In this document: positions 3,301 through 41,622 of the stretch, piece by piece | Numbering within the stretch: position 1 is the first letter of the stretch | Layout: the number at the start of each line of letters is the position of its first letter | DNA from: Adineta vaga | Taxonomy: Eukaryota > Animalia > Rotifera | DNA length: 64,000 nucleotides | NCBI GenBank assembly: GCA_021613535.1 | Contig: CP075492.1 | Location: 8,370,001-8,434,000 of the forward strand | Reading direction: 5' to 3' | Program-made: the position numbers and the translations under genes | Notes under the pieces: generated by a model | The model's database searches: none | What the model saw: only the letters and a program-made list of their open reading frames with translations | Told to the model about the DNA's origin: nothing

Positions 3301-6300
3301 TCTGATTCAATTGGTGAAGAAGTTTTCTTATGAGATTTAATTGTTAAATCTAATGGAGCATTTAATGATTGATCATTTGTTGTTGGAGGAAAGATTTGTT
3401 GAAAATCATTTCGCGTAGAAAAATTTAACCATGCATATGGATTGAATGGAAAAGCAGGATGATGAGGTGGCGGTGGTGGTGGTGGAATAGAAAGATTATT
3501 GGATGTATGTGGAAGCATTTCACTAGCTCGATTCGTTGGTTTCGTTTGAATAGTTGTACTTGATGTAGATGATTTCGGTGGACGAATAGTAACTGGTGCG
3601 TCAAGTGGTGGTGGACTTTCGTCGTTATGTTTTTCTTTCCAATGTTTATTCAAACTTTTTCTCCATTTGTATAAATTACCACATAATGAACAGGCAAATT
3701 TGACTAAAAGAAAGTTTTTTTTTCAGTGTTTATCTTTTGTTCTATTTTACAAATGAATTAACATACCAGCACTAGCATCATCTGGATCAGGTACACGACG
3801 ATATCTTGCAGGATCAACAGAGACGTTGTAAGGACGTTTTCGATCAGGAACAACTAGGTTGGATGTGTTGTAGTTGAATGAGACGAAGTAACGGATAGAT
3901 TAAGTTTCTTGTTTGTGCTAGTTGAAGGATTCTATACGACGAAAGAGAAAGAGAGAAATAGAGAGACAGAGAGAAAAAAATCAATATGGATTGGTTGAAA
4001 AAAAAGAAGCTGAGTGAAAATGAGAAGAAGAGAAAGCAATGGCATCTTATTTTATGAGTGCCCAATAATAACAACCATGACCGAAAAAAAATGATCTTTC
4101 GAGCAGGTGTCAGTGAGCAGAAAAAAAGAAAACAGAACTATTTCTGATTGTTAGATCCTTCTACGCGAATGAAACGAAAGAAAAATATCTCATAATATAG
4201 TGTTAAAATAGAATTACATGCGTGAGCGCAAGTCTCATATTCTCAAGAGAAGACATTTAGAAAAAGGAGAAACATGAATGTGTATTTTATCATTGAAACA
4301 TCATCGTTTTAATCGAAAAAAAAAGCTCTGTACACCTGCGAATGATAAGAAAATGAATTGATCTGTTCACATTCTGTTGTTTTATTGTAACGAGGAAGAA
4401 GAGAGGCAAAAAAAGAACGAAAGGTTTCACACATCATTACTGATTTTCTCTCTCGTGCGAGAAATTAAAAATTCACTTTAGATTAGTGTTCTGACATGGA
4501 CACATAAAAATTTGATCCGTTTTTATGATCTCAAATGGAAATAATTAATCAAACGCTTCTGCTGAATATGATTGAAAAATGAAACTTTTGAAATATGCAT
4601 AAAATAATAGTTTTAATCCGATGAAGTTTTTTTATGCAAATCTCTTGTAATAGTAACTGTCTGACTGCTGTTTTTCTTTTTACTTGAAAAAAATGAAAAG
4701 AAATCTAGACATTTGCATTTACGGAGAAGAATGGTAATTATCATAAAGGTTTGTTTCGTTCGTTGTTCTATTATGTCATGAAAAAATTTTGTTCGAACGA
4801 ATGAAGATCAAACGAAAAGATACAGAGACGAAGAGAGAAAAAGAAACTGATGTCGACATACTTGACAACGATCATTTTTCAAGTGGAATTATGGTAAAAC
4901 AAGTGTCAACTTCAATCAGAAGATCAAGTGAAGAAAGATATTTAATATCCGATTAAGTCTTTTCTTCGAACAGAAGTTCACTTTTTTTTCTTCTTTCTCT
5001 TTAGAAAAGATTGTTATTTAAATAAATTTATGCTTATTATGATAGGATTCGATTTATGAGAAAAATTGTTGCTTCATAGACGAGATTATATGGACATATC
5101 GTGCTCGATCTATGATTTTTTTCGTTCTATAATAAGAAAATTGATATAGAGAAATAATCTTATCATTAAGTTGCACGATTGTTTCTCGCGTAAGAAAGAG
5201 AAAATAAGTAAATGTATTGGTAACATGAAGAGTATTCAAGGTGTTCGCTTCTTTGGCTTGATTACTAGTTTTCTGAATGATATGAAAAAGTAAAGAAATC
5301 GACATGTTACTATTATCTTTTACCTGAATTATTTGTATTACAAGAAACTCAATACGATAAAACAAAAAGAAAGAAAGAAACGCTTTGTAGATTACACGCT
5401 TCTTTTCTTTTACTATGTTTTAATGTATTCATGTCTATTATCTACATATACAATAAACATTTTTTCATCTTGCATCAATAGTCAATTGTACAAGTCTGTA
5501 CAGATTGACAAACAAAAGTTCAATCATACTAATAGAATATTTTTGTACTGAAATATCAATTTGACTAGAGTAGATTGAAACTATTGCACTGATCATAAAG
5601 TTCGAGTTAAATTCAATGTGATCATATCATACTTCATTTCTAGATATATCAGATCGAGTTTGAACGTTATCTACTCTAACATGAAACTTTCAATCGAAAT
5701 TCTTACTTGTTCATCTTCGGAAATTTGTTCATCATTTTCAAAGATCATGGAATTTTGTTCTTTTGCGTACATATTGATTACATCGTCATCTTCCATTTCA
5801 CCTTCAGATTCTATTTGTTGTTCATTTGCGGATATATTCAGTTTTGTCGTTGATGATGACGCTGCAGATAATGTTTGATGATTTGTTCTTAAAAGAGAAA
5901 ATGATACTTAAAAAATCTTCAATTTTAAAATAAAAAGAATCTTACTGATGAGAATTTAAATGCAATTGATAGTCAAATGAGGATAATGAATAATATCGAC
6001 AAATATCACATAGAAAAACTTGCTCTTGGCCGTGGTCAAATTTCATATGTGTTTTAAATTCATTGATATTTGATGATGAAAATTCACATTCTTCACATTG
6101 ACGAACAAGTCGAGAACGAGGAGCTAATTGTTTTCGTCTAAAAATACAAATTATTAGTATTAGAATTCTTCGAATATAGTTTTAATTTTTAACGAAAACC
6201 AACGATTGTAGATTTCTGTCTTATCTAGATATCGTTAGTATCATATGCAATACTAGTAAGTATTATGTGATGATTAGATCTCAATAAGACGAAGAAAATT

Positions 6301-11914: not shown

Positions 11915-12942
11915 TATGCTATAGAATACTAAAATAGATAAAAATGAATTAAAAAAACAAGTTATTCTCTGTAATTTTACTTCTTGTGAATGGAAACTAA
12001 GATGAGAAGTTAGAAGATTTAATCTTTAATTAGATGGATATATTCATCTGTGTCATGAAAAGATATATAATGTTTTTCATGCTTCAAGTAAAAATTTGTT
12101 ATATAGAATACGAATCCTAGGAGTAGAAATTTAATCATCCGATAAATTAGTCAATAGAAAAAGTACGGATGTCATTCTGTTTCTACATGCTAGTTGTTTT
12201 ATCTCAACAGTCAACTGATATTTATTAATTTATATTAAGAAAAATATTTTTCTCTTTCTTCCAGAACTTCTGCCTATAGTTCAAATATCTTACAGATCGT
12301 GATACTTTTTTCTTAAACAAAAGTAGTTTAACATCTAAAGAACATGATCGATATAAGAGATAATTCCTATTTTTTTTTCTAAATTTAAAATAGATTTCTT
12401 CGTTTTTTTCATAAATAAATTTTCGACGTTACCAATGTGTACGTACTGGAACAGTGACTTCTTCTTGTTTTTAATAATAAATATAACAGATAATAGAGTT
12501 GTTGCGGAAAGAAAATTGAATAAATAAATAGTGAAGGAAGTTCATGCAAATGCTTTGGTGCATCCGCATTAGAATTCTTAACGTTAAATAATTGCCTGCT
12601 CTTTTATTAATGAGAACTACCCTTTCAGACAACCAGCGGCACACAGAAAAAGAACATAAAATTAGGTTAACTCAACACAGTTAATAAAAAAACATCTAAG
12701 AAGAATATCTATCGCGTTACATATAAGACTTTATGTAGAATATTTCTTTATTTTAAAAGTAAAATCATATGAAATTATTCGTTTTCCGTGCCAATTTGAT
12801 ATATATATTGAAATAATTTTTTGCTTCATATAATCGTTCAAATGAATAGATTGTATCATTTCATGTAATTAATTCTGTAAGACCAAACTTTTCATCAGAA
12901 AATTCAATTCAATTAAATCGATACAAAATGAATATTGATGAT

Positions 12943-28457: not shown

Positions 28458-30201
28458 ATGGATTCTTCATCATTAGCTACGAAAAAACGTCGAATAATGA
28501 TAATTACAGCGGATGAAAGTGTTATTGAACAAATTCAAAATAATAACAATGGATCGCTTCTTAAATCAATTGTTTTGGATTCCAATGGTGATGATGTTGA
28601 ATTTTCACATTCACATATTAAAACGATCCAAACGGAAGCACATTCGCCATCACCAAAGAAACATAAAACTGGCTCGTTAACTTGTGTTGTTTGTGGTTCA
28701 GCAGCAAATGGATATAATTTCGATGCAATAACATGTGAAAGTTGTAAAGCATTTTTCCGTCGAAATGCATTGAAAGATCTTGTAAGAATCTAATAGAAAA
28801 CATGAATTTAAATTTATTGATTAGTTGTTACTATAGGCAACATTTGAATGTCGTCGTGGAAATAATTGTGATATTACAATTGAATCACGTCGCCGTTGTG
28901 GAGCATGTCGATTAGCAAAATGTCTAAGTAGTGGAATGAAATCGGATCGACTTCTAACGGTATTTATTCGAAAAGAAAATCGAATAATCTGATTGTACGC
29001 GATATTTTAGGCCGAGCAAAAAGCACTGAAATTACGTCAAATCGAAGAAAATCGAAATTTAAAAACACACCTTGAAGATGAATCAAATGACACAAAATTG
29101 AAAGAAGTTAAATCAGTATCCGCAACAGTTTCTGATAATGTAAGTTGAACAATTCTATTTCGAGAGAATGAAGCTCTTAATACAATCTTTTCTTAGACAC
29201 TGAATTCAACAAAAACAAATCTACTTTTGATAAAAGATATAACTGATCTTCTACCAAATAAAACAGTATCAGAACAACGAAGTTTACTTAGTTCAGAAGA
29301 TTTACAACGCGTAGAAACAATTCAACTATCCTATGAACAACGTATTGAACTTGGTAAGTAAGCGACAAAATGTCCTATATTTAAATGAGTCTTAATCTGC
29401 ACTTCGCGAAAAAGATCATCATAAAAAAAGTACTGCAATGTGTTCCTATTTCTCAGGAAACACGACGATGATGGATACACACTGTTATAAATTTTAGCTT
29501 ATTTTTCTCGGAAAACTATTCCTTTTTTTATAGCAGCTCGCGAAGGTCTTCCATGGAATCCAACAATACATGCCACAACACTTCTGGATCATATCAATTC
29601 GCACTCAGTATCCGCTTTACGACTTCTATCTTTCTTCAAACAAATTCCTGAATTTAACGGCTTGAATGTTCATGATCGTGTGACATTGATTAAATATAAC
29701 TTAATGCCACTTGCCATCCTAAACTGTACACTTTCCTATGACACCAAAACTGAAACTATTCAAGAAGCAAAATCTGATGCTCCATGGGATTCATCGATTT
29801 TACTCACAGTTCATGGTGATGATATCTATCAACGTGTGAAAAAAGTCTTCGAATCGTTTAGTCGTATTGCGCAACATGATCAACGAATCATTCAATTAGC
29901 ACTTATTACACTTATTCTAACGAAAGGTTTTTCGACGAATAGTAATGTATTGGAACCTATTCTTAACGATGGTCTAGCTGTATATCGTGCACAAAATTAC
30001 TATACAGAATTACTATGGAAATATTTAGAAACAGTACATGGTTATGGAAGAGCTATTCGTATATTTAATGAATTAGTCGCACATTTTATGTCCTGGCAAG
30101 CACTTCAAAATTATCTAACACGTAGTTTATCGAAAATTTTAACACCTGCAGAAATGAATGACTTATTACCAATTATGAAATCATTGATAAATATTCCATA
30201 G
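28458..30201 (+). CDS. Nuclear hormone receptor, NR1I/NR1J (VDR/HR96/DAF-12-like) type
   Basis: [28 protein letters not shown]|..[23 protein letters not shown] and LBD signature [16 protein letters not shown]. Five exons in frame. Confidence 0.9.
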
Positions 30202-30548
30202 AGTAAATAAAAAGGAAACTGTTTTCGGAAATATCTGTTTTTTTTTCTCTTCATTTGTTTTGTGTCTTCATCAGTAGTTATTCATACTTCTCTAATGTTT
30301 ATGTCCGATTGTTTCTTTATATCTGATCATAAAATATAATTTTGAATTTCTTCTGTTCGTTTGTAAATAAGTTATGCTAAAATAATTGATTGTTCTAATA
30401 CATTACTTCTAGAATCTATTCGAATAAAAACCCAGCCTTTGTTTATTTATCTTTGTTCATCATTTTTAAAGTACATGCAAAAGAAAAAAAATACGAAACA
30501 CCTTGATAAGAAATGATTCATTGCACCGTTAAAAAGCAAAAACTTTGT

Positions 30549-32341
30549 TTATGCTAATGATGAATGAAGAGGAAGTGCCGGTTCGTTAATAGAACCGAAA
30601 TCGATTAAAATTATATGTCGAACATCTTGTGTTATTGGATTCGAACTTGTCGGAGTTGGTGTACTAACAATAGGAGAAATACCAACAACACGATGTTCAA
30701 CAATAAATGCACCCTAGAAAAAGAAGAAAAAATATATATCCAACACTTTAATCTGTCTTTCTTTTTTCATAAAGTTTGTTCAACTTACAAGAATTGTCTT
30801 CACATCTGAAGATTTTATTTTAAGAAAACATCGAATAGCTATTTTAGCAAATTTTCGATACAGAACTAATTCTTTGGAATCACTCTGTCGAAATTCATCA
30901 TCCATTTTCGTATCTGTTTCATTCGGTTCAACATGTGCATGTAATCGTATGGAACGATCTTTATTCAATGGTAATGTTAGTTGACTTGTTAAAATATATT
31001 CATCTAATTGATTAATTCGAGCTATTAAATCTTTATCCGTATTTTCTTCGCGAATTTCATCTAATGTATATAATTTCAATGTTGTTTGTTCGTCAAGTTG
31101 ATTGACAATGGAAACAACACATGGATTATTATCATTGATGGACCATGTTGGATGATGCCAGATGCGTATCTGTAAAGCAAAGTAGTATTGATATTGAATC
31201 TTTCAATACATATATATATATATATATGTCTTACTTCGGGAATAAAAAATAATGCCATTTGATGTAACTTAAATTTAATTAATTTTGGTGATGGTTCTGG
31301 TTTGAGAACATTATGATCACATTCTTTACATCTTTTCGATTGTTTTGAAGTGAAATGTTTTGCCAATGGATAAAGTCGATCAATAGTAGATGGTTGAATT
31401 TCAACTGAATTTAATCGTTGTGTTATTGTTGTTAATTTATTAAAATCATATGAATTATTTAGAAAGAAATTTTCATCAAGTGGTTCTATTTCTGTAATTG
31501 GATCCGATGATTTTGGTGTTGGATTTGTTGTTGTTGAAGAGTCATTTAATGATGGCGTTTTCAATATTCCACCTGTACGAATTCCACGACGTGTTAATGG
31601 TGCTAACAGACCATATTTATCCGATGATGATCGAGATGTTGTTGGCGTTGGAATACCTGTGCGTAATTTAACAGTTGAATACCGTTTTCGATCACGTTCT
31701 TGTTTTTCTCGTGTTGCTATTTGTTTATAATGTTGAAGAAGTTCATTAAATCTTCCTTCATGTATATTATCTTGTGCTTTCCATGAATTCAATGTTGGCT
31801 GATCAACAAGACGAATATCTCTTGTTGACCAACGACAAACACTACATGCCAAATAATAAACTTTTTTCGATGGTGTTTGTAATCCACTCGCATTCGTACT
31901 ACTAATACTATCATCCGGATCAATACCACTAGCAGCAGTACTTGCACTATCCAGTGTTGTATTTAAACTAACTGGCATCGTTGCTGTTGTATTCGTTGCT
32001 CGTGTCACTAATGTATGATCACAACATGGACAAGAGAAACAACTTTGACAACGATTTTTTCGTGTTATTGCTTCATGAGATTGAAGATGTTCATAACAAC
32101 TTGGACAAAAACGGCAATCAACCTAAATAAAGATATCAACATTATTACAAATCATTTAAAATGGAAGTGAATGTTTTGCATAACATAATATAGATTCTTT
32201 TTGTCAACGTACCTCTAATATTACACAATCTTTACATTTTATTTTCAAGCAATGTCGACAAAAATACAAATAACATAATGATTTAAATGATCCACAACTA
32301 CATTGATATTTCACTCGATGAACATTTAGTAATGTTGTCAT
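30549..32341 (-). CDS. DCTN4: Dynactin subunit 4 (p62)
   Basis: LYFCRHC, FCPSC, RKNRCQSCFSCPCC, YYLACSVCRWSTRD, SKRCKECDHNVLKPE..IKFK. Confidence 0.93.
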
Positions 32342-32583
32342 AATGGAAAATTATTCTACAAGACTTTCTTTTTTTGTTATATCTAAAATACAAATGATCA
32401 AATATATCTATATATTCAAATAGTAAAATTGCAAAACAATAATGAACTAATTTGTGTCTTTTTCTACAATTTTTTGTTGAAACATGCTGACAAACTTACA
32501 TACATACATAATAGAAAACACAGAGAACAAGAAAAGAAAGAACATGCATTTTACTATTTGATTTTAACTATAAAATGATCCTA

Positions 32584-34226
32584 TCAAAATTCCCATGATA
32601 AATTAATACTATTACATTCATTATTGGAACGATCTAGACGAAATACATAGACATTCATATATCACTAATAAAAACATTCTCCTACTGAAGATTTGATCCA
32701 TAGTAGTTTCTGTATGTATCAATTGTTTTTCTTGAAGTGAGCTAAGAAGTTTTGTCATGTCATCAGCAAGAAGTTGAGGATCGTTGCTGATTTTTTTAGG
32801 ATGCTTTACAAATGGATGAGCTAATAATTCATCAACAGAACATCTAAAAGCAATAAAAAGAGATCGAACGTTATATTAATCGAATATAACGATCTTTTAC
32901 CTTGTTTCAAGACGTGTCGAAACACAACTTTTTACAAATGAATGGAATTCTTTCGAATATCGTCGTTTTTTTATTTCTTCAACATATGCACTGGAATTTT
33001 CATCACTCAGAGCGATCACTATATGACAAATAAGAACTAGAACGTAAAGATTGAGAAACTTTCAAATAACTTGCTTTCATCTGTTAATTGAGTTTGATCA
33101 AGTAGAATTGGTTCTGAGCCTTGCATTTTTGCATATAACATCTAAATTAACATATTTCTATTTCAACATATAAAATCATCCATTCAAAGCGGATGGATGA
33201 TGTATGTTTTACTTACACTTAAATGTCCAAAAGGCATATCAAGATAAGCATTACTTCCATTAGCAAGTTCACATGCAACAGTACCTAAACTATAAACATC
33301 ACTTTTGAAATTATAACCTTCAGCATTCTAAAGAGAGAAAAAAACATAAATTCTTTTTCTTCTCAAATACACAAACAATTTCAACAAACTTGAAAGATAA
33401 TTTCTGGTGCTAAATATAACAATTCATCTTTAAGACCATCTGTATAATCGTAAATCTGGCGTCGTAATTTCCCATCAAATGGTGATATCATGGATATACA
33501 ATGAGAAAAATTATCTAATAATATACGTCCATCATCACATAGATAGATATTATTCGAGGAAACTCCACTAGAAGTAAAATCAGAATGTCAATGGTGTAAA
33601 TCGAAGATGAAAATTAATTTACCGATGCATAATATGTCTATCTTGTAGATAACGAAGAGCTTGTAATATTTGCCACATGATATGAGCAATTAATTGCTCA
33701 CGTATACCAAAAGGATAAACAGTTAACAGATCCGCACAAGAACCTTTACAAATACAATATCAAAGAGTCAATCAATAAAAAATATTCTATTTCGTTTCTT
33801 TTATTTACCAAATGATGCATACGGTTTCACAAGATGAAGTTTTGTATCCAAAAGAAAACAATCTCGAATTGACATTAAATTCTGATGATTTAATTGTTTA
33901 TACCATGAAATATCTTTCTGAAAAACAAAAAAAAACCTTAATTTAATGCACAATTAACTTCGTTTTCTCTACATACAATAAATTCACTAAGATTTGTTAA
34001 TTTTTCCAGATCAACAATTTTCATAACATATTTTGCTTTAGTTTTATCTTTGAAATCATAGATTAAATAAGATCCACAATCTTCATTATCATCAGTATTA
34101 AAATCAGGTCGTTCTAGAAGACGTGAAAGAAAAACAAACGAACTCCTTTAATCGAAAAACAAATAGATCGTTTATCTTACTTAACATATCAAGAATTCGA
34201 TAAGTTAAATGATAATTATTCGACAT
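32584..34226 (-). CDS. STRAD: STE20-related kinase adapter (pseudokinase)
   Basis: Kinase fold with HRG in place of HRD and NFS in place of DFG. FGSCADL, YLAPEIIFQNAEGYNFKSDVYSLG..CELANG. The spliced last exon ends in the MO25-binding WEF* motif. Confidence 0.9.
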
Positions 34227-34270
34227 GATTTTGTTTTTCTAATCTAAAACAAGAAAAAATCGAAATCATT

Positions 34271-35215
34271 TCATTGCCAATGATCAAGAATTTGTTGAAG
34301 TATATTTTTAAATAATTTCATAGCTTCAGTTTCTATAATCATTTTAAAACCGTTCTCAACTTGTTGAATACCCTGATCAAGTATTGTATTCAATTGATTA
34401 TCAATTGGTAATCGACCTAGAAATGGAATAGAATATTGTTCAGCTAATAACTGACCACCACCTTGTGCAAATATATTTGTACATTCACTACAATGTGGAC
34501 AAACGTAACCACTCATATTCTCAATTAAACCAATGATATGAAATGATGTCTTTTGGCAAAATGTTATCTCACGACGAACATCATTTATTGATAACATTTG
34601 AGGTGTTGTTACAAGAATAGCACGAAGAAAATCTTTGGCATGCTCATGCTGCTTAAGAACAGTCATTACGGTAATATGTTCGTCGGATGTACCAGGTGGT
34701 GTGTCAATAATCAAATAATCAAGTTCACCCCATTTAACACCGGTTAATAAACGTTGAATCATTGCCATTTTTCGTGGTCCACGCCAAATAATTGCATCAT
34801 TTGGATTATCTAATAATAATGCCATAGACATTAATTTAAATCGTGAACTTTCATTCGATGATGAGAAGACATTGACCGGTGTCATACCTAGATGAAAGAT
34901 TGTCGAACGACAATGATGAAGAATATCAAATCAAAATCATACCTTCTTCAGTTTCATAAACAGTATTTGATTGGGAAGTTTTATCGACACCAAACATTTT
35001 CGGAATCGATGGTCCACATAAATCAACATCTAATAAACCAACTCGATTTCCACTAGCATATAAGCATAAAGCAAGTTCAGCTGATACTGTTGATTTGCCT
35101 TAAAATTCAAAAATATCATTTAATTAGTAATAAAAATCTCAAAAATCGACTTACCAACTCCTCCTTTACCGGACAAAACGACAATAATTCGTTTAATATT
35201 ATCTAAACCAGTCAT
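34271..35215 (-). CDS. NUBP2: Cytosolic Fe-S assembly factor NUBP2 (Cfd1)
   Basis: [51 protein letters not shown]. It lacks the N-terminal Cys cluster of NUBP1. A possible ATG micro-exon lies at 35292. Confidence 0.92.
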
Positions 35216-35399
35216 ATCTAAAAAAATTAAAACATTTTAAATATTATTCGAACAAATAGATATATGTTCATTGGTTAAATCTTCCAACCCATGTAGACGA
35301 AAGTATTCGAGAATGAAAACAAAAAACAAATTTTCTTTCAGGAATAAAAATACAAATAAGAATTTCGATTTATTTGTGAGAAAAGGAGATTATTCAAAA

Positions 35400-37974
35400 C
35401 TATTCGGGTAATAATTTAATTGTAAAATCAAGTTCAAAATCATGCGACGTAAACATTTCATCACTGTTTTCAGTTAGCATTGTAAATGAACCACGTTCAC
35501 GAGTTGCCATTGTTGAAAGACCATTTTCGGGAAACTAAAACAAACAAAAATAAATCATGAAATTACAATCATTTCGTTGTTATAATTATGGATCTTATCA
35601 AAAATATTTATTATTACTATTAATGTATCCATAGTTGTTTGCATGGTTTTTGTGGTCGTTTTTGTATGTTTAGCTTCACTTTTCTGTATCTATAATACAA
35701 ATATATACTTGAGAACGTGCTGAAATGAATGATTCTTACTATTAAAAGTTGTTCATCAGCTTTTTGCTTTGCTGCTTCTTCGTCAGCTGCACGTCGTGAA
35801 TGTAATTCTCGAATAAGTTCTTCTTTTGTTTGTTGAGCCTACACAAAACATAATCATTGATCTATTAACAAATTCGATTTCCAAATAGAAACATACTTTG
35901 GAAACAAGAACAGGTGCACATCGACGACGTGTAAATGGATCAGAAGCTGCATTTGGATGTTCTTGAGCTTCACGCTATAGATTTACAAATTTTCTCTTCG
36001 AAGATAATCATCGCTTGATGAATGTCAATATTACTTACAGTTAACGCCATTTCAACATTCTCCTGTGTATTTTTTCGATTTCTTTGATTGATCTGACTAG
36101 AAACATAAAATTGAATTGATTTTCTACAATAGTTTTCGTTTTAAAGTATCATTGTCTTACGCAATAGCTGAAATATTTTGTGATCGTATTCGATCTAATT
36201 CTGATGCACGTTGTTCTGTTTCATTCAATTTCTTTCGTAATTCAGTTTCTCTTTCAATATCATTTTCATCTTTGGCAATATCCTAAACATCATAAAAGTA
36301 TATCAATGAATAATTTTGTATTTTCAATAGTTACTATTTCTTTAAGTAATTCATTTTTAGCCATAGCATAATTAATCGGAGTTTTTCGAAAGCGACTTTT
36401 TTCTTCGACTATTTTACTTATATCTTGATTACTTAAAACATATTGTTTACATTTATTTATTTCTGTAACTTTATTGTCCAGATCTTTCACAGTTGGTAAG
36501 GATACACCCTAGAATGAAGTCTTTTACTATTAGAGGAAAATGTTAAAATGTTATTCTTACTTGTTTGATTGTTGTTTCACGCCAACGTTTAAATTCACTA
36601 TCGGAGATTTCACTGTTCGAAACGAATTCAAGACGAAAGACACGTTCATTATGTCCATGTCTAAGCAAAAATCTTGATAAATATCAAATTTTCCCAGGAA
36701 AAATCGAATTTGATACTTTAGACGAAGTCCTTTATTTGTACGTGTAGCACCAAGATTATAGATTTTTCCTGTTTCTACCACATCACGAATTTCACAAATC
36801 TAAATTTTGAATTCAATCGAATCAATGTATAAAAACTTTCTATAAACTTACTCGATAAACGGGTGAACCATTATTCTGTCCGATATTGATTCGAACAAAA
36901 GCACCTTTGGCTACTTTAGGAAAGAATGGCGCATGACACCATCTAGATAAATTCATTAGACAATCTCTTTTTTAAGTATAGTAGAAACTGACTTTTCCAT
37001 TCGAAATCGTGATAGAACCATCGATTTAAGTTCGGATTTAGTAGTAATCTGAGTACGTTCTTTGCGACTGGATTCTTGTTTAGCTTGAGACTTTTTATCA
37101 CGATCATCCGGTGATCTGATAAAAATATAAAATTTGTAAATAAGATTTGTTTTATGGATTCTATTCTTACCGAGATCGTCGACGACGCGAATAACCCATA
37201 TTATCACCTTCTTCTTCATCCGAACTTGAACTTGAACTTGAATAAATTTCATTGACAGTATATTTTTCTTTCTTATTTATTTTTGATATTTTTCCGCGAG
37301 TTTCATCATCATCGGGCGATTGATCAATAGATTTTGGTACAGATTTTTTCAGTTTGTCATCTGGAAATAAATACATAGATCAATTGAATTTCTAAAGATT
37401 TTGCTACCTTGTTTTTTCTTTCTTTCTTCAATCAAAGCTTGAAGTGTTTTACTATGTTGTGTTTCTTTTTGTTTAGAAGCATTGGCTTGTAGTCGACGAT
37501 TTGCTGGTCCACGGTGATCATCATCATCATCATCTTCTGCATAAATATTATCATCAAATAGAGTCGATTTTGTTTTAGATTCTTTGTCCGTATCATCGGT
37601 AGGCTTCTGTTTCGATTTCAACTTTTTACTAATTTCTTCACTAAGAATCGACAGAAGATCAACAATGATTATTTAATCAAAGTTTTCAAAAACATTTTCC
37701 CCTACCGATGATTTAATATTTCCCGTTCTTCATGTCTTTTCAATAATTCCGATTCACGTTCACGTTCTGTTAAAGTATTTAGCCAGGCTCGATCATCAGC
37801 ATTTCCACGATATTCATCGTCATATCCATCAGCATAAATTTCTGTACGTATACAAAATAGTAAACATGTTTATTCAGAAGAATTTTATCGTTTACTTTTT
37901 GGACGTGATTGACCATCATCAGAATCGGAGTTACTAGCCTTTCGTTGACGTTTTCTTTGATCGATTTTACTCAT
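35400..37974 (-). CDS. RTF1: PAF1 complex subunit RTF1 (Plus3 domain)
   Basis: [27 protein letters not shown]|[56 protein letters not shown]. Confidence 0.93.
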
Positions 37975-38106
37975 ATTGAGATAGTAGATGATGATAAAAT
38001 TCAATGTAAATATATTACTCTTCTTCTAAACTAACCATCCCTCTGTTATTTTTCACGTTACTGATTCATATCAACTATGTTGGTTCTCCAATGAAACAGT
38101 TTTGAG

Positions 38107-38115
38107 AAGATGGCG
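38107..38115. promoter_or_regulatory. YY1-like motif AAGATGGCG upstream of RTF1
   Basis: Motif lies ~130 nt upstream of the RTF1 ATG, at the head of the co-oriented gene run. Motif match only. Confidence 0.3.
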
Positions 38116-39843
38116 CTAACAAATAGTACGGTTTTATGGACAATTGAAAAAGCAACTATCAAATATATATCACAACGAAAACAATACTATATGACTCTCT
38201 TTAGTTGAACAGTATTAGAGGGCATATGTTTCAAAGATACAAAATCTCTTTAGCTACTATATTTGTTGAAGAAATTTTGTTCTATATGACTGTTTCGTTT
38301 GTTATATTCAAATATAAAAGATACTTTCGTAAGTTTCCACTTGGAATTAATCTATATATAAATCAGTTCTTTTCTTTCTCTTTGAATACACTATGTTATG
38401 GAAATTCCTAGAATCATTAATCATTGCTTTGAATGTATAGTAAGTAATAAAGTCTATCATTGCAGTAATTCATCACATTCTCTATTTTAAAAATCCTTTC
38501 GAGCACATAAAATAAACTATAGTCTAGTTCATACTTGTCTTATTAAATTGACAAATACTTCCACCGATCAATAGAATAGATGAACTTCATGAAATTTTAA
38601 TCACACAAAAGAGTATTGTGAACATCAATGCTCGGCAACGTTTTGAAATAAAGACCTTGAACTGTATGTTGAAGTGCAACATATGTTACAAATTTCCGAT
38701 TGATCTGTTATGAAATGACCTTAACTCTATTGTAATTAAAGTCTAATAGTATACTTTCTTTTCATAAAGAAAAAGTATACAATAAAATGACCTACTGCTA
38801 GGAGAATAATGAGTTTTATTAGCACAAGTGAAGTTAATAATGAAATAAGATTTAATTATATTTCATATCCTCTTATAGTTAATAGTATTACATACTTCAT
38901 TGGAATATGTTGACATGAAAAATATGTATGTTCTTATTACTGAAGTCATTAGAAATTATCAAAACCAGAAACTGTCATATCATTAATATAGACGAATATC
39001 TGCATTTGATCGTATGAAGTTAAAAACCACAAAATAACTTCATATATATTTCTCTAAAATCTTCATATCACTTTTCTCGTTCTTTACGAACTGCAAAAGC
39101 TCCATGACATATAGTTCAATGAATTCACACATTTCTTCCAAATTGAATTCAACCATCCACTTTATTTCAAGTGCATGTTCATCTTCCAACCGTCATTACC
39201 TAATAACCATTTGTTCACACTTGGAAAACTCAAATGAAACTTCACATTGATTTTAGTCAGATTTACTCAACACGTTCATAACGTTTTTTTTTTCTCTTTT
39301 TATTATTAAAGAAAAGAGCTGATGATAATAATAATAGAACAAAATGAAACATAACCACGAATGCAATAAACATGAAGAGAAAAGAAAACGCAAGTGTGCA
39401 ATTTGTTTTAAATATGAATCAACTAGAACGTTGTTTCATATGTATTACAAGCACTAAGCAAAGAAAGAAAGAAAGAAAGAAAAAGAATTGACTATTAAGA
39501 ATTTCATAGGATAGTCTTTTTTCAAGTTTAAGTAACACATACACAAGACAATAAGATCATTCTCATGAGACGAATATGTATTTTTTTATTTTTGAGCCAG
39601 AAAAGACAAGAAACAAAACGAGGGAGATTCAGTATTGAATGTATTCTATTCTAACAAGAATTCTAATCTATATACACACACAAAACATAAGATGAAGTAG
39701 AAAATAACTATGAGAAAATAAGCAAGATGAAGTGAATAATAAACACATCAAAACAACAAAAAGAGAGAGACACACACACATGAAATATCGCCTATTTCTC
39801 CTCAACTAAACGCAAACGTCTTTTTTCTTTCGCTTTGCTTTTT

Positions 39844-41622
39844 TTAAGCTTTAACAGCTTTGATCGTTGTTGTTCCTGGACGTTTAACAAACATGCGACG
39901 ATCATAATGAGCCCAGACCGTTCTAAGATAGAAAAATTTTATTTCAAATAAATAACATTTCAATTTTCCAATTAAATAATCTTACCGATAAAGAAAACCA
40001 GCAACAATTGCACCAACGATTGGACCAATCCAATAAACAAAATGATTTTCCCATTGATTAGCAAAAATAGCTGGACCAAGTGAACGAGCCGGATTGAGTG
40101 AACCACCGGTATAGGCACCACTAAAATAAATTTCAATATTCTTTTTCTTTTTATTCTCAGTTTCTTTGCACTTACACAGCAAGAATATTAACAGCTAATG
40201 TAAATCCAATAAGAATTGGAGCAAGACCTGTTTTCGATTTTGTATCAAGTGCAACCATAAGGATAACAGTAACAAGAACAAATGTTACAATAAATTCAGT
40301 GGCAATACCCTGTAATATGAGACGAAATTTATATCTTTCTATTACATTTCAATGATGTTATAAAATACATACTTGCCAGATTCCAACCGAATCAAAGGTA
40401 TAAACTGGATACACGACCAGCTGTTTCATTATTAATAGTGTATTTAGCTAATAATGTAGCTCCACCTTTACATAGATTATAGCTATATCCTGCAAGTAAT
40501 AAACGTAAAAGACCACCAGCAGCAATACCTGAAAATGATTGAATACGATGGTTATTTTATTTTTTTGAATCATTTCTTTTAGACCTACCTCCTAAAAGTT
40601 GCATGATAACATAGAGAACAGCCATAACTGCTTGCATTTCACCTGCAATTAAAACGCCAAGTGTAACAGCTGGATTGAAATGAACGCCTGAAATATGTCC
40701 GAAACTAGCAGCGAGAACCATCAAAGCAAGACCGAATGATAATGCTGCAGCAATAACACCACCACTTGAGCAGGCACCCCATATACCAATAAGAACAAAT
40801 AAAGTTGTTCCAATCTTAATGAAAATAAAAGTATTAACAAATTTTATTAGTCTGAAATAAGCGATGTATCGATTAATAGACTTACAAGTTCAACCAATAA
40901 TGGTCGAATAACTTGAATAAATTTGTTTTTGTCTTCGGGTACAACATCAACATTCCTAGAAAGAAGAAATCAGACATGTTTTGGTATCGAATTCTTTATA
41001 CTAAAAGCATAATCTGATATCTAATGTGTTGATCGCAACAATGCGCTCAATGTTTGCCTTATGTTTTTCTCGTACATTAATTCCGGTTCATAACCGTTTG
41101 ATACGTATTTGATTGATGACATCGTGGAACGTTAAAGGATATGCGATGAAGACTGAAATGAACGATTTATCTCTCTGTCTATCTGTCTATATATATATAT
41201 ATGGGGTGAGCCTATGGAAGGAAGTCTGATATCTTATCAAAAAACAAAGGCATGCGATTGTTTGTCTAGATGTGTTTTGTTTTATCATCTTACAATTACA
41301 TGTGAAATTTTTCACTTTTATATACATATTTGATTTCCTTGTCTATATCCGATATGCAAATCAAAAAATTAATATCATAGTGTTAATTAGAAGAATTTAT
41401 CTATAAGAGAATAGCGGGTGATCAGAGAGAGAAAACGAATATAAAGATTGCGGGGGCGTCATTCGGATGGAATATACATATGGTGCTCACTTACTTTCCA
41501 ACAACAGTCGTATGAGTATCAACTGGTACTGTTGATGCAGCAACCGGATTTGAATGAATAACTTCTTCGGATGAAGCTAAGATTGGTTGACGTTCACTAA
41601 GTTGAAGTTCGGTAGAAGCCAT
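39844..41622 (-). CDS. Aquaporin, AQP8/TIP-like
   Basis: Two NPA boxes ([13 protein letters not shown] and [15 protein letters not shown]), [15 protein letters not shown]. Multi-exon, starting at MASTELQ. Confidence 0.93.

Follow-up and report, generated by a model that had tools for sequence, protein, structure and literature searches.

A run of RTF1, NUBP2, STRAD-like and DCTN4 genes of Adineta vaga, a bdelloid rotifer, as a probable polycistronic unit resolved by spliced-leader trans-splicing

Polycistronic nuclear genes are known from nematodes, tunicates, flatworms and chaetognaths, and the minor SL1-type operons of Caenorhabditis elegans, named after their spliced leader (SL), resemble the operons without intercistronic DNA of Ciona. 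In the latter, the complementary DNA of the upstream gene ends in AG followed directly by the tail, this AG being the acceptor of the downstream gene, and most are without AATAAA (PMC1488885). Spacers are likewise short in Oikopleura operons, at 23-30 nucleotides (nt) (PMC1488885), and in chaetognath operons, which are SL-bearing pairs less than 250 bp apart (PMC12460157). For bdelloid rotifers, SL trans-splicing was reported by Pouchkina-Stantcheva and Tunnacliffe, 2005, a work which, as cited in PMC3795323, describes the leader rather than operons. A methods paper of 2021 stated that operons and polycistronic mRNAs are not reported in rotifers (PMC7986045), a paper of 2025 counted rotifers, without data, among the lineages with trans-splicing and operonic transcription (PMC12460157), and our literature search found no description of a rotifer operon. 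Here we analyse a run of four genes, RTF1, NUBP2, a STRAD-like pseudokinase gene (STRAD) and DCTN4, in a 64,000-nt stretch of the Adineta vaga genome, referred to as the window (contig CP075492.1, positions 8,370,001 to 8,434,000, of assembly GCA_021613535.1, which comprises 100.8 Mb in 6 contigs at 31% GC). We consider it rather likely that NUBP2, STRAD and DCTN4, probably led by RTF1, are a polycistronic unit resolved by SL trans-splicing, closest to the type known from Ciona.

All four genes, which are unrelated housekeeping genes, lie head to tail on the minus strand, as read from 30300 to 38400 of the window. RTF1, the possible first cistron, occupies 35400-37974 (15 exons; ATG 37974-37972, stop 35402-35400), NUBP2 occupies 34271-35215 (3 exons; ATG 35215-35213, stop 34273-34271), STRAD occupies 32584-34226 (10 exons; ATG 34226-34224, stop 32586-32584) and DCTN4, the last cistron, occupies 30549-32341 (ATG 32341-32339, stop 30551-30549). 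The stop-to-ATG spacings are 184 nt between RTF1 and NUBP2, 44 nt between NUBP2 and STRAD and 242 nt between STRAD and DCTN4, all below the roughly 250 nt expected of an SL-resolved operon. The coordinates and spacings in the initial annotation, which had proposed such a unit from the sequence alone, are correct to the base on our reading of the minus strand.

The evidence for trans-splicing comes from four RNA runs of four studies (X2, X16, X6 and X5), placed on 32150-38149 as assembled Logan contigs, which are de Bruijn graph paths and not raw reads. Since introns are removed in the contigs of all four runs, the material is RNA-derived. One X2 contig starts at 35219, at the NUBP2 acceptor AG (35218-35219, in the context ...tttttttAG|atATG), and carries 19 extra letters that read CTTATTACAACTTACCAAG on the mRNA strand; together with the AG of the genome at 35219-18 they make up the full SL, so that the NUBP2 junction is SL|AT-ATG, with a 5' untranslated region (UTR) of just 2 nt after the leader (SL + AT + ATG). 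Similarly, an X16 contig starting at 32384, at the DCTN4 acceptor AG (32383-32384, ...tattttAG), carries 10 extra letters, ACTTACCAAG, again completed by the genomic AG, and DCTN4 is therefore trans-spliced at 32383|32382. The SL letters at these two acceptors come from two different studies. The initial annotation had predicted SL addition at three AGs, and it was right to the exact site for NUBP2 and DCTN4; for STRAD no SL letters were seen among the contig ends listed for the four runs. When metagenome contigs were scanned for the pattern of an SL-STRAD junction, only chance matches appeared, none of which extended into the rest of the SL; the contigs retrieved for this, some of them from assemblies of gut metagenomes, served only for that check.

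Other contig ends were also seen in this region. A contig of X5, a 2013 run, has 12 non-SL letters at the DCTN4 acceptor at 32384, reading ACGACACGTATG on the mRNA strand, and the 14-mer composed of ACGACACGTATG and AG is absent from the assembly; an adapter, a chimera or a different leader might account for these letters. Long loose ends at 35203 and 34079 were considered as alternative upstream exons and rejected, as they come from genes elsewhere, on C2 and C5, which are unrelated and have 18-20 nt in common with the stretch studied.

The leader is encoded many times in the genome. Using the rotifer SL as query and the reversed sequence as control, we found matches with one or two mismatches at 59 places in the assembly versus none for the control; in the 42 copies with one mismatch the difference is confined to the first base. 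Every SL copy that was read has GTAAAT, a GT donor, directly after the leader, and in the predicted SL RNA the 3' part of the SL is paired with the donor in a fold better than those of shuffled sequences (z -3.6). The same 23-nt sequence, identical to the genomic SL found here, is given in a review as the only rotifer SL (PMC3795323). Thus, SL RNA genes with a donor site, which an SL-resolved operon needs, are present in the genome. Many are arranged in head-to-head inverted pairs about 154 bp apart, for example at L001:1490-1680 (C1:2551160-2551336), and clusters occur, for example at C5:9.88-9.93 Mb and C5:10.91-10.93 Mb. Several variant leaders exist as well, including one with A at position 10, AAATTACC and ACGAAGAG.

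The gap between NUBP2 and STRAD (34227-34270, 44 nt) contains a T-rich tract, an AG at 34245-34244 and a second AG at 34240-39, and lacks both AATAAA and a usable donor, just as the initial annotation had read it. We predict the first of the two AGs (34244-34245) to be the STRAD trans-splice acceptor based on its conservation. The gap measures 29-51 nt in eight rotifer lineages, those of 51% GC included: 42 nt in Rotaria, 38 nt in L018 (a 771-kb metagenome contig of 51% GC), 44 nt in L026, 29 nt in L019-22, 51 nt in L023, 37 nt in L024 and 43 nt in L025. Each of the eight aligned lineages shows here a T-rich tract that ends in YAG and is followed by AT, whereas the second AG is not conserved. 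This is so in the genomes of 51% GC too, where base composition would not lead one to expect a T run. Given that the two testable acceptors carry the SL in RNA and that the gap acceptor is kept in eight lineages, the pattern is beyond chance.

The neighbouring acceptors are conserved too. NUBP2 has AG|atATG likewise in Rotaria, L018 and L024, and DCTN4 has ttttAG|AT likewise in Rotaria and L018; where readable, both acceptors are kept in all lineages except L023. An AT follows every confirmed or predicted trans-splice acceptor (at 35217, 34243 and 32382 in the window, and in L014, L018, L024 and L026), with the exception of NUBP2 in L026 (AG|AC), as against roughly one in three of the acceptors of cis-spliced introns in RTF1; AG|AT may be part of a trans-splice site consensus. 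The Logan and ENA contigs L023 and L025 of these relatives were considered as spliced dicistronic RNAs, and this was rejected as they are DNA, each keeping at least one intron.

RNA reading across the NUBP2-STRAD junction is present in X16, in which a contig of 1951 nt (contig 1) covers NUBP2 exons 2-3, the stop codon, the 44-nt gap and each exon of STRAD, all introns having been spliced out. Since this path spans the junction, RNA that reads across the NUBP2-STRAD acceptor exists, so that an absence of read-through RNA, which the initial annotation had named as speaking against the unit, is not what was observed. In X16 the two genes are covered at one depth, and in X2 they lie on separate contigs of unequal depth (52-61 for NUBP2 versus 20.8 for STRAD). 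The contigs show 26 splice joints in total, 15 of them listed, versus 25 introns expected, leaving at most one extra; a 5' UTR intron cis-spliced into the 44-nt gap, which had been named as an observation that would speak for an independent STRAD transcript, is not evident among them.

The 3' ends of the upstream mRNAs appear to adjoin the acceptors of the genes downstream. X6 looks like a 3'-biased library, as it covers only the 3' parts of the genes (RTF1 35217-36760, NUBP2 34229-34555 and STRAD 32365-33914), with zero depth over the 5' halves, and its contigs stop 0-18 nt beyond the acceptor of the gene that follows. The RTF1 end at 35217 lies one base past the AG at 35219-18, with 7 further letters; the NUBP2 end at 34229, within an A-rich run, lies 15 bases past the AG at 34245-44 and has 2 further letters; and the STRAD end at 32365, likewise within an A-rich run, lies 18 bases past the AG at 32384-83 and has 1 further letter. 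If a tail were added at the AG, it would match the A-rich runs of the genome and give ends such as those of X6, and from these contig ends we infer that polyadenylation may take place at the AG. The suggestion that NUBP2 3'-end formation coincides with the STRAD trans-splice site is compatible with the contig that stops inside the gap (34229), a short way beyond the acceptor.

The poly(A) signals are consistent with such an arrangement. Neither AATAAA nor ATTAAA occurs in the 44-nt gap or in the final 100 nt of NUBP2, and no canonical AATAAA lies within about 40 nt of the upstream 3' ends, as is typical of Ciona; RTF1 has AATAAT and the last gene, DCTN4, has AATAAA (30442-30447, on our sequence reading), at the end of the unit. 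The RTF1 3' UTR contigs extend to 35277 in X2, 35246 in X16 and 35217 in X6, and since they reach 35217 the 184-nt spacer (35216-35399) is essentially all RTF1 3' UTR, transcribed up to the acceptor. Within it, the AATAAT at 35243-35248, 23 nt before the NUBP2 acceptor, is the likely poly(A) signal of RTF1, and an AATAAT also lies 14 nt before the NUBP2 acceptor AG in the GC-rich L018 and L026. The STRAD-DCTN4 spacer (32342-32583, 242 nt), through which the X6 contig runs to 32365, looks more like a worm-type spacer with an additional, distal alternative end. A conserved STRAD 3' UTR element at 32543-32559 contains AGTAAA, a likely proximal poly(A) signal that is AATAAA in Rotaria and L018; STRAD contigs of X2 and X16 stop near 32529 and 32543, 7-21 nt after the hexamer at 32555-32550. 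It is because of these proximal ends, and of the 145 nt between about 32529 and 32384 that bin depths show as uncovered in X2, X16 and X5, that we liken this junction to those of worms.

The gene order and close spacing described for this window recur in other rotifers. Four Rotaria assemblies have, on one strand, UBR5/EDD, 194 nt, NUBP2, 42 nt, the kinase gene, 220 nt, dynactin p62, 198 nt and an ML-domain gene, followed by a convergent zf-C4 gene. L018 has aquaporin, RTF1, 79 nt, NUBP2, 38 nt, STRAD, 215 nt and DCTN4, and L026 has RTF1, 78 nt, NUBP2, 44 nt and STRAD. The order NUBP2-STRAD-DCTN4 is thus kept in Rotaria and L018, and RTF1-NUBP2 in L018 and L026, with short gaps throughout. The gene upstream of NUBP2 varies, being RTF1 or, in Rotaria and L019, UBR5/EDD, and it lies on the same strand either way. 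L018 and L026 are ENA metagenome contigs of a rotifer lineage of about 51% GC, versus 28-39% at the other loci, in which intron positions are partly the same as here and NUBP2 is without introns. The extra ML-domain (E1_DerP2_DerF2) gene of Rotaria (L014:12745-13296), on the same strand and 198 nt after DCTN4, is absent from this position of the window; its stop codon is 67 nt from the convergent zf-C4 gene. One of the four Rotaria assemblies models the STRAD-like kinase and dynactin p62 as a fusion of 644 residues (L016:8978-12546), which is probably an annotation error caused by tight spacing or read-through RNA.

The nearest gene upstream of RTF1, an aquaporin (MIP) gene in tandem, is 1.85 kb away, or 0.9 kb in L018, and the divergent zf-C4/DUF829 gap is 0.7-0.85 kb; these gaps, which have to hold promoters, are several times larger than those inside the run. 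Upstream of RTF1, at 38084-38117 on the minus strand, lie two candidate promoter motifs, namely GCGCCATCT(TC) at 38117-38106, which is YY1-like, and ATTGG, the reverse of CCAAT, at 38093-38084. Both are kept in L018, at about 5480-5515, despite the difference between 31% and 51% GC. The furthest RNA contig reaches 38018, and the motifs lie 66-100 nt above it. An exact GCGCCATCT occurs once in the window, and the exact 12-mer occurs 9 times in the genome versus 2 for the control; its use as a general promoter marker was rejected because it is uncommon. In the spacers of the run, no conserved blocks were seen besides poly(A)-like and acceptor motifs.

How, then, does the locus compare with operons described elsewhere? 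As in the operons of Ciona intestinalis without intercistronic DNA (PMC1488885), one SL would serve all genes, downstream cistrons (NUBP2 and DCTN4) are trans-spliced, the upstream mRNA apparently ends at or next to the downstream acceptor AG, NUBP2 lacks AATAAA near its end and the genes are unrelated housekeeping genes. Unlike in Ciona, the phylum is Rotifera, poly(A) exactly at the AG is deduced from contig ends, and STRAD apparently also uses a proximal poly(A) site, some 150 nt ahead of the acceptor of DCTN4, which would give a worm-like spacer. With the SL2-type operons of C. elegans the locus shares the same-strand order, a spacing of about 100-250 nt, trans-splicing of downstream genes (NUBP2 and DCTN4) and housekeeping genes, whereas nothing points to a second leader specific to operons and the 44-nt junction is far below the usual worm spacer. 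The 19 SL letters on NUBP2 are those of the main genomic SL variant and not of a second leader, the 10 letters on DCTN4 being too few to tell. Short spacers, a single SL pool and an enrichment in housekeeping genes are also features of Oikopleura and chaetognath operons, which, in contrast to the single locus and contig-level RNA evidence presented here, were documented genome-wide with reads. Finally, the SL sequence is identical to that of bdelloid SL trans-splicing, and this genome contains the SL RNA genes.

Based on these observations, we propose a model for expression of the run. RNA polymerase II would start upstream of RTF1, as the 1.85-kb spacer and the conserved GCGCCATCT and ATTGG motifs suggest. 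Transcription would then pass through all four genes, for which the spacer-covering contigs and the crossing of the 44-nt gap are partial evidence. The SL, of 22-23 nt, would be joined at the AG before each downstream gene, as is seen for NUBP2 and DCTN4 and as conservation suggests for STRAD, and it would supply the cap and nearly all of the 5' UTR of the downstream mRNAs. The upstream mRNAs would end on the next acceptor or just a few bases from it, leaving little or no intercistronic RNA; the X6 ends point to this, and the AATAAT 14-23 nt before the NUBP2 acceptor is a further basis for it. STRAD would in addition use its proximal poly(A) site, which lies some 150 nt ahead of the acceptor of DCTN4. 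As a tentative extension, which we think rather unlikely to hold in full, each precursor might give rise to the upstream or the downstream mRNA and not both, and this design might be independent in a third animal phylum and widespread in the genome.

Several observations weigh against a polycistronic unit, and a rival reading is that of four independent, tightly packed genes whose promoters lie inside the 3' part of the upstream neighbour, the SL serving to trim the outron and the bridging contig merging separate transcripts. All RNA support comes from assembled contigs, which are no proof of a single transcript, of its start or of its end. Because contigs are graph paths and not molecules, a promoter hidden inside NUBP2 is compatible with them, and the X16 path is equally expected from a STRAD pre-mRNA that starts inside NUBP2, which the graph could merge with NUBP2 mRNA. 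Other animals that use an SL trans-splice single genes too, and so the SL on NUBP2 and DCTN4 is by itself no proof of an operon. Nor is gene order evidence on its own, since the synteny of the flanks (zf-C4 on the opposite strand, DUF829 and aquaporin), which are not part of the proposed operon, is retained as well. The least secure part of the proposal is the place of RTF1 as first cistron, since UBR5/EDD stands there in Rotaria, at about the same distance. Furthermore, the STRAD-DCTN4 spacer has uncovered sequence in three of the four runs, and the genome is compact in general, as the 67-nt convergent gap in Rotaria illustrates. Against independent genes, however, stand a NUBP2-STRAD gap that at 29-51 nt in eight lineages is too small for a promoter, spacers whose only conserved blocks are poly(A)-like and acceptor motifs, upstream 3' ends that adjoin acceptors, and gaps of 0.7-1.85 kb where promoters are needed. 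We regard independent genes as the main rival account of the run, though a less likely one.

The SL on NUBP2 and DCTN4 and the bridging contig bear out part of the reading in the initial annotation, whereas no SL letters were seen on STRAD in the four runs. Their lack there would be explained if STRAD were not trans-spliced at all but were translated, through re-initiation 44 nt after the stop of NUBP2, from a stable bicistronic mRNA of the two genes, and the spliced X16 contig that covers both genes at one depth fits this. However, a T-rich tract and YAG kept in all eight lineages, even at 51% GC, suit an acceptor better than a re-initiation spacer, the X2 contigs of the two genes are separate and unequal in depth, and the X6 NUBP2 contig ends in the gap; such an mRNA seems to us quite improbable. 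That the pattern is due to chance or artefact, AG after T runs being common at 31% GC and SL-like contig ends being assembly noise, is harder still to credit. The loose ends at 35203 and 34079, derived from unrelated genes, are a point in its favour, but ends of 19 and 10 nt that match the SL exactly, at predicted AGs and in two studies, an SL gene in 59 copies versus none for the control, and acceptors conserved across lineages all argue against it. On balance, we favour a polycistronic unit.

The identities of the four genes, as named in the initial annotation, stand on matches in Pfam, in word searches and among solved structures. All protein searches took single exons, rather than joined (spliced) protein models, as queries. 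RTF1 matches Plus-3 (1.5e-9) and DCTN4 matches Dynactin_p62 (9e-16). Two exons of NUBP2 match ParA/NUBPL at 1e-59 and 5e-15, and in the word search the nearest non-rotifer relatives of the NUBP2 exon are cytosolic Fe-S assembly factor NUBP2 proteins at 50-60% identity, with rotifer proteins at 77-91%. The STRAD gene has a weak Pkinase match in Pfam, and the best solved match of one exon is STRAD alpha (2wtk, 3gni; 6e-7), the next kinase being at 5e-3; its translation has the changes of a pseudokinase, with HRS instead of HRD and no DFG. Because of the exon-by-exon search, the STRAD identity rests on short exons. No close second (ohnologous) copy of NUBP2 was found in the assembly, the only matches being 42% and 38% identical (C5:8289536-8290090 and C2:13352347-13352865), which are probably NUBP1 and NUBPL; a second copy of the run as an internal test of conservation was accordingly dropped. 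Beyond the end of DCTN4 a zf-C4 gene on the plus strand converges on the run, with its stop at 30201. An element of the DCTN4 3' UTR, TTAACGGTG..TTGAAT (30505-30520), is shared by Adineta and Rotaria (L014, about 12585-12600), and an Rfam search of 30000-40000 gave no match.

If the reading proposed here is true, a documented rotifer operon would add another phylum to the short list of those with polycistronic nuclear genes, and it would inform the question of whether operons arise again and again from SL trans-splicing. The annotation of bdelloid genomes would also be affected, the STRAD-DCTN4 fusion model in one Rotaria assembly being a case in point. Furthermore, the conserved junction of 29-51 nt between NUBP2 and STRAD would be a compact, testable case in which 3'-end formation and trans-splicing share one site.

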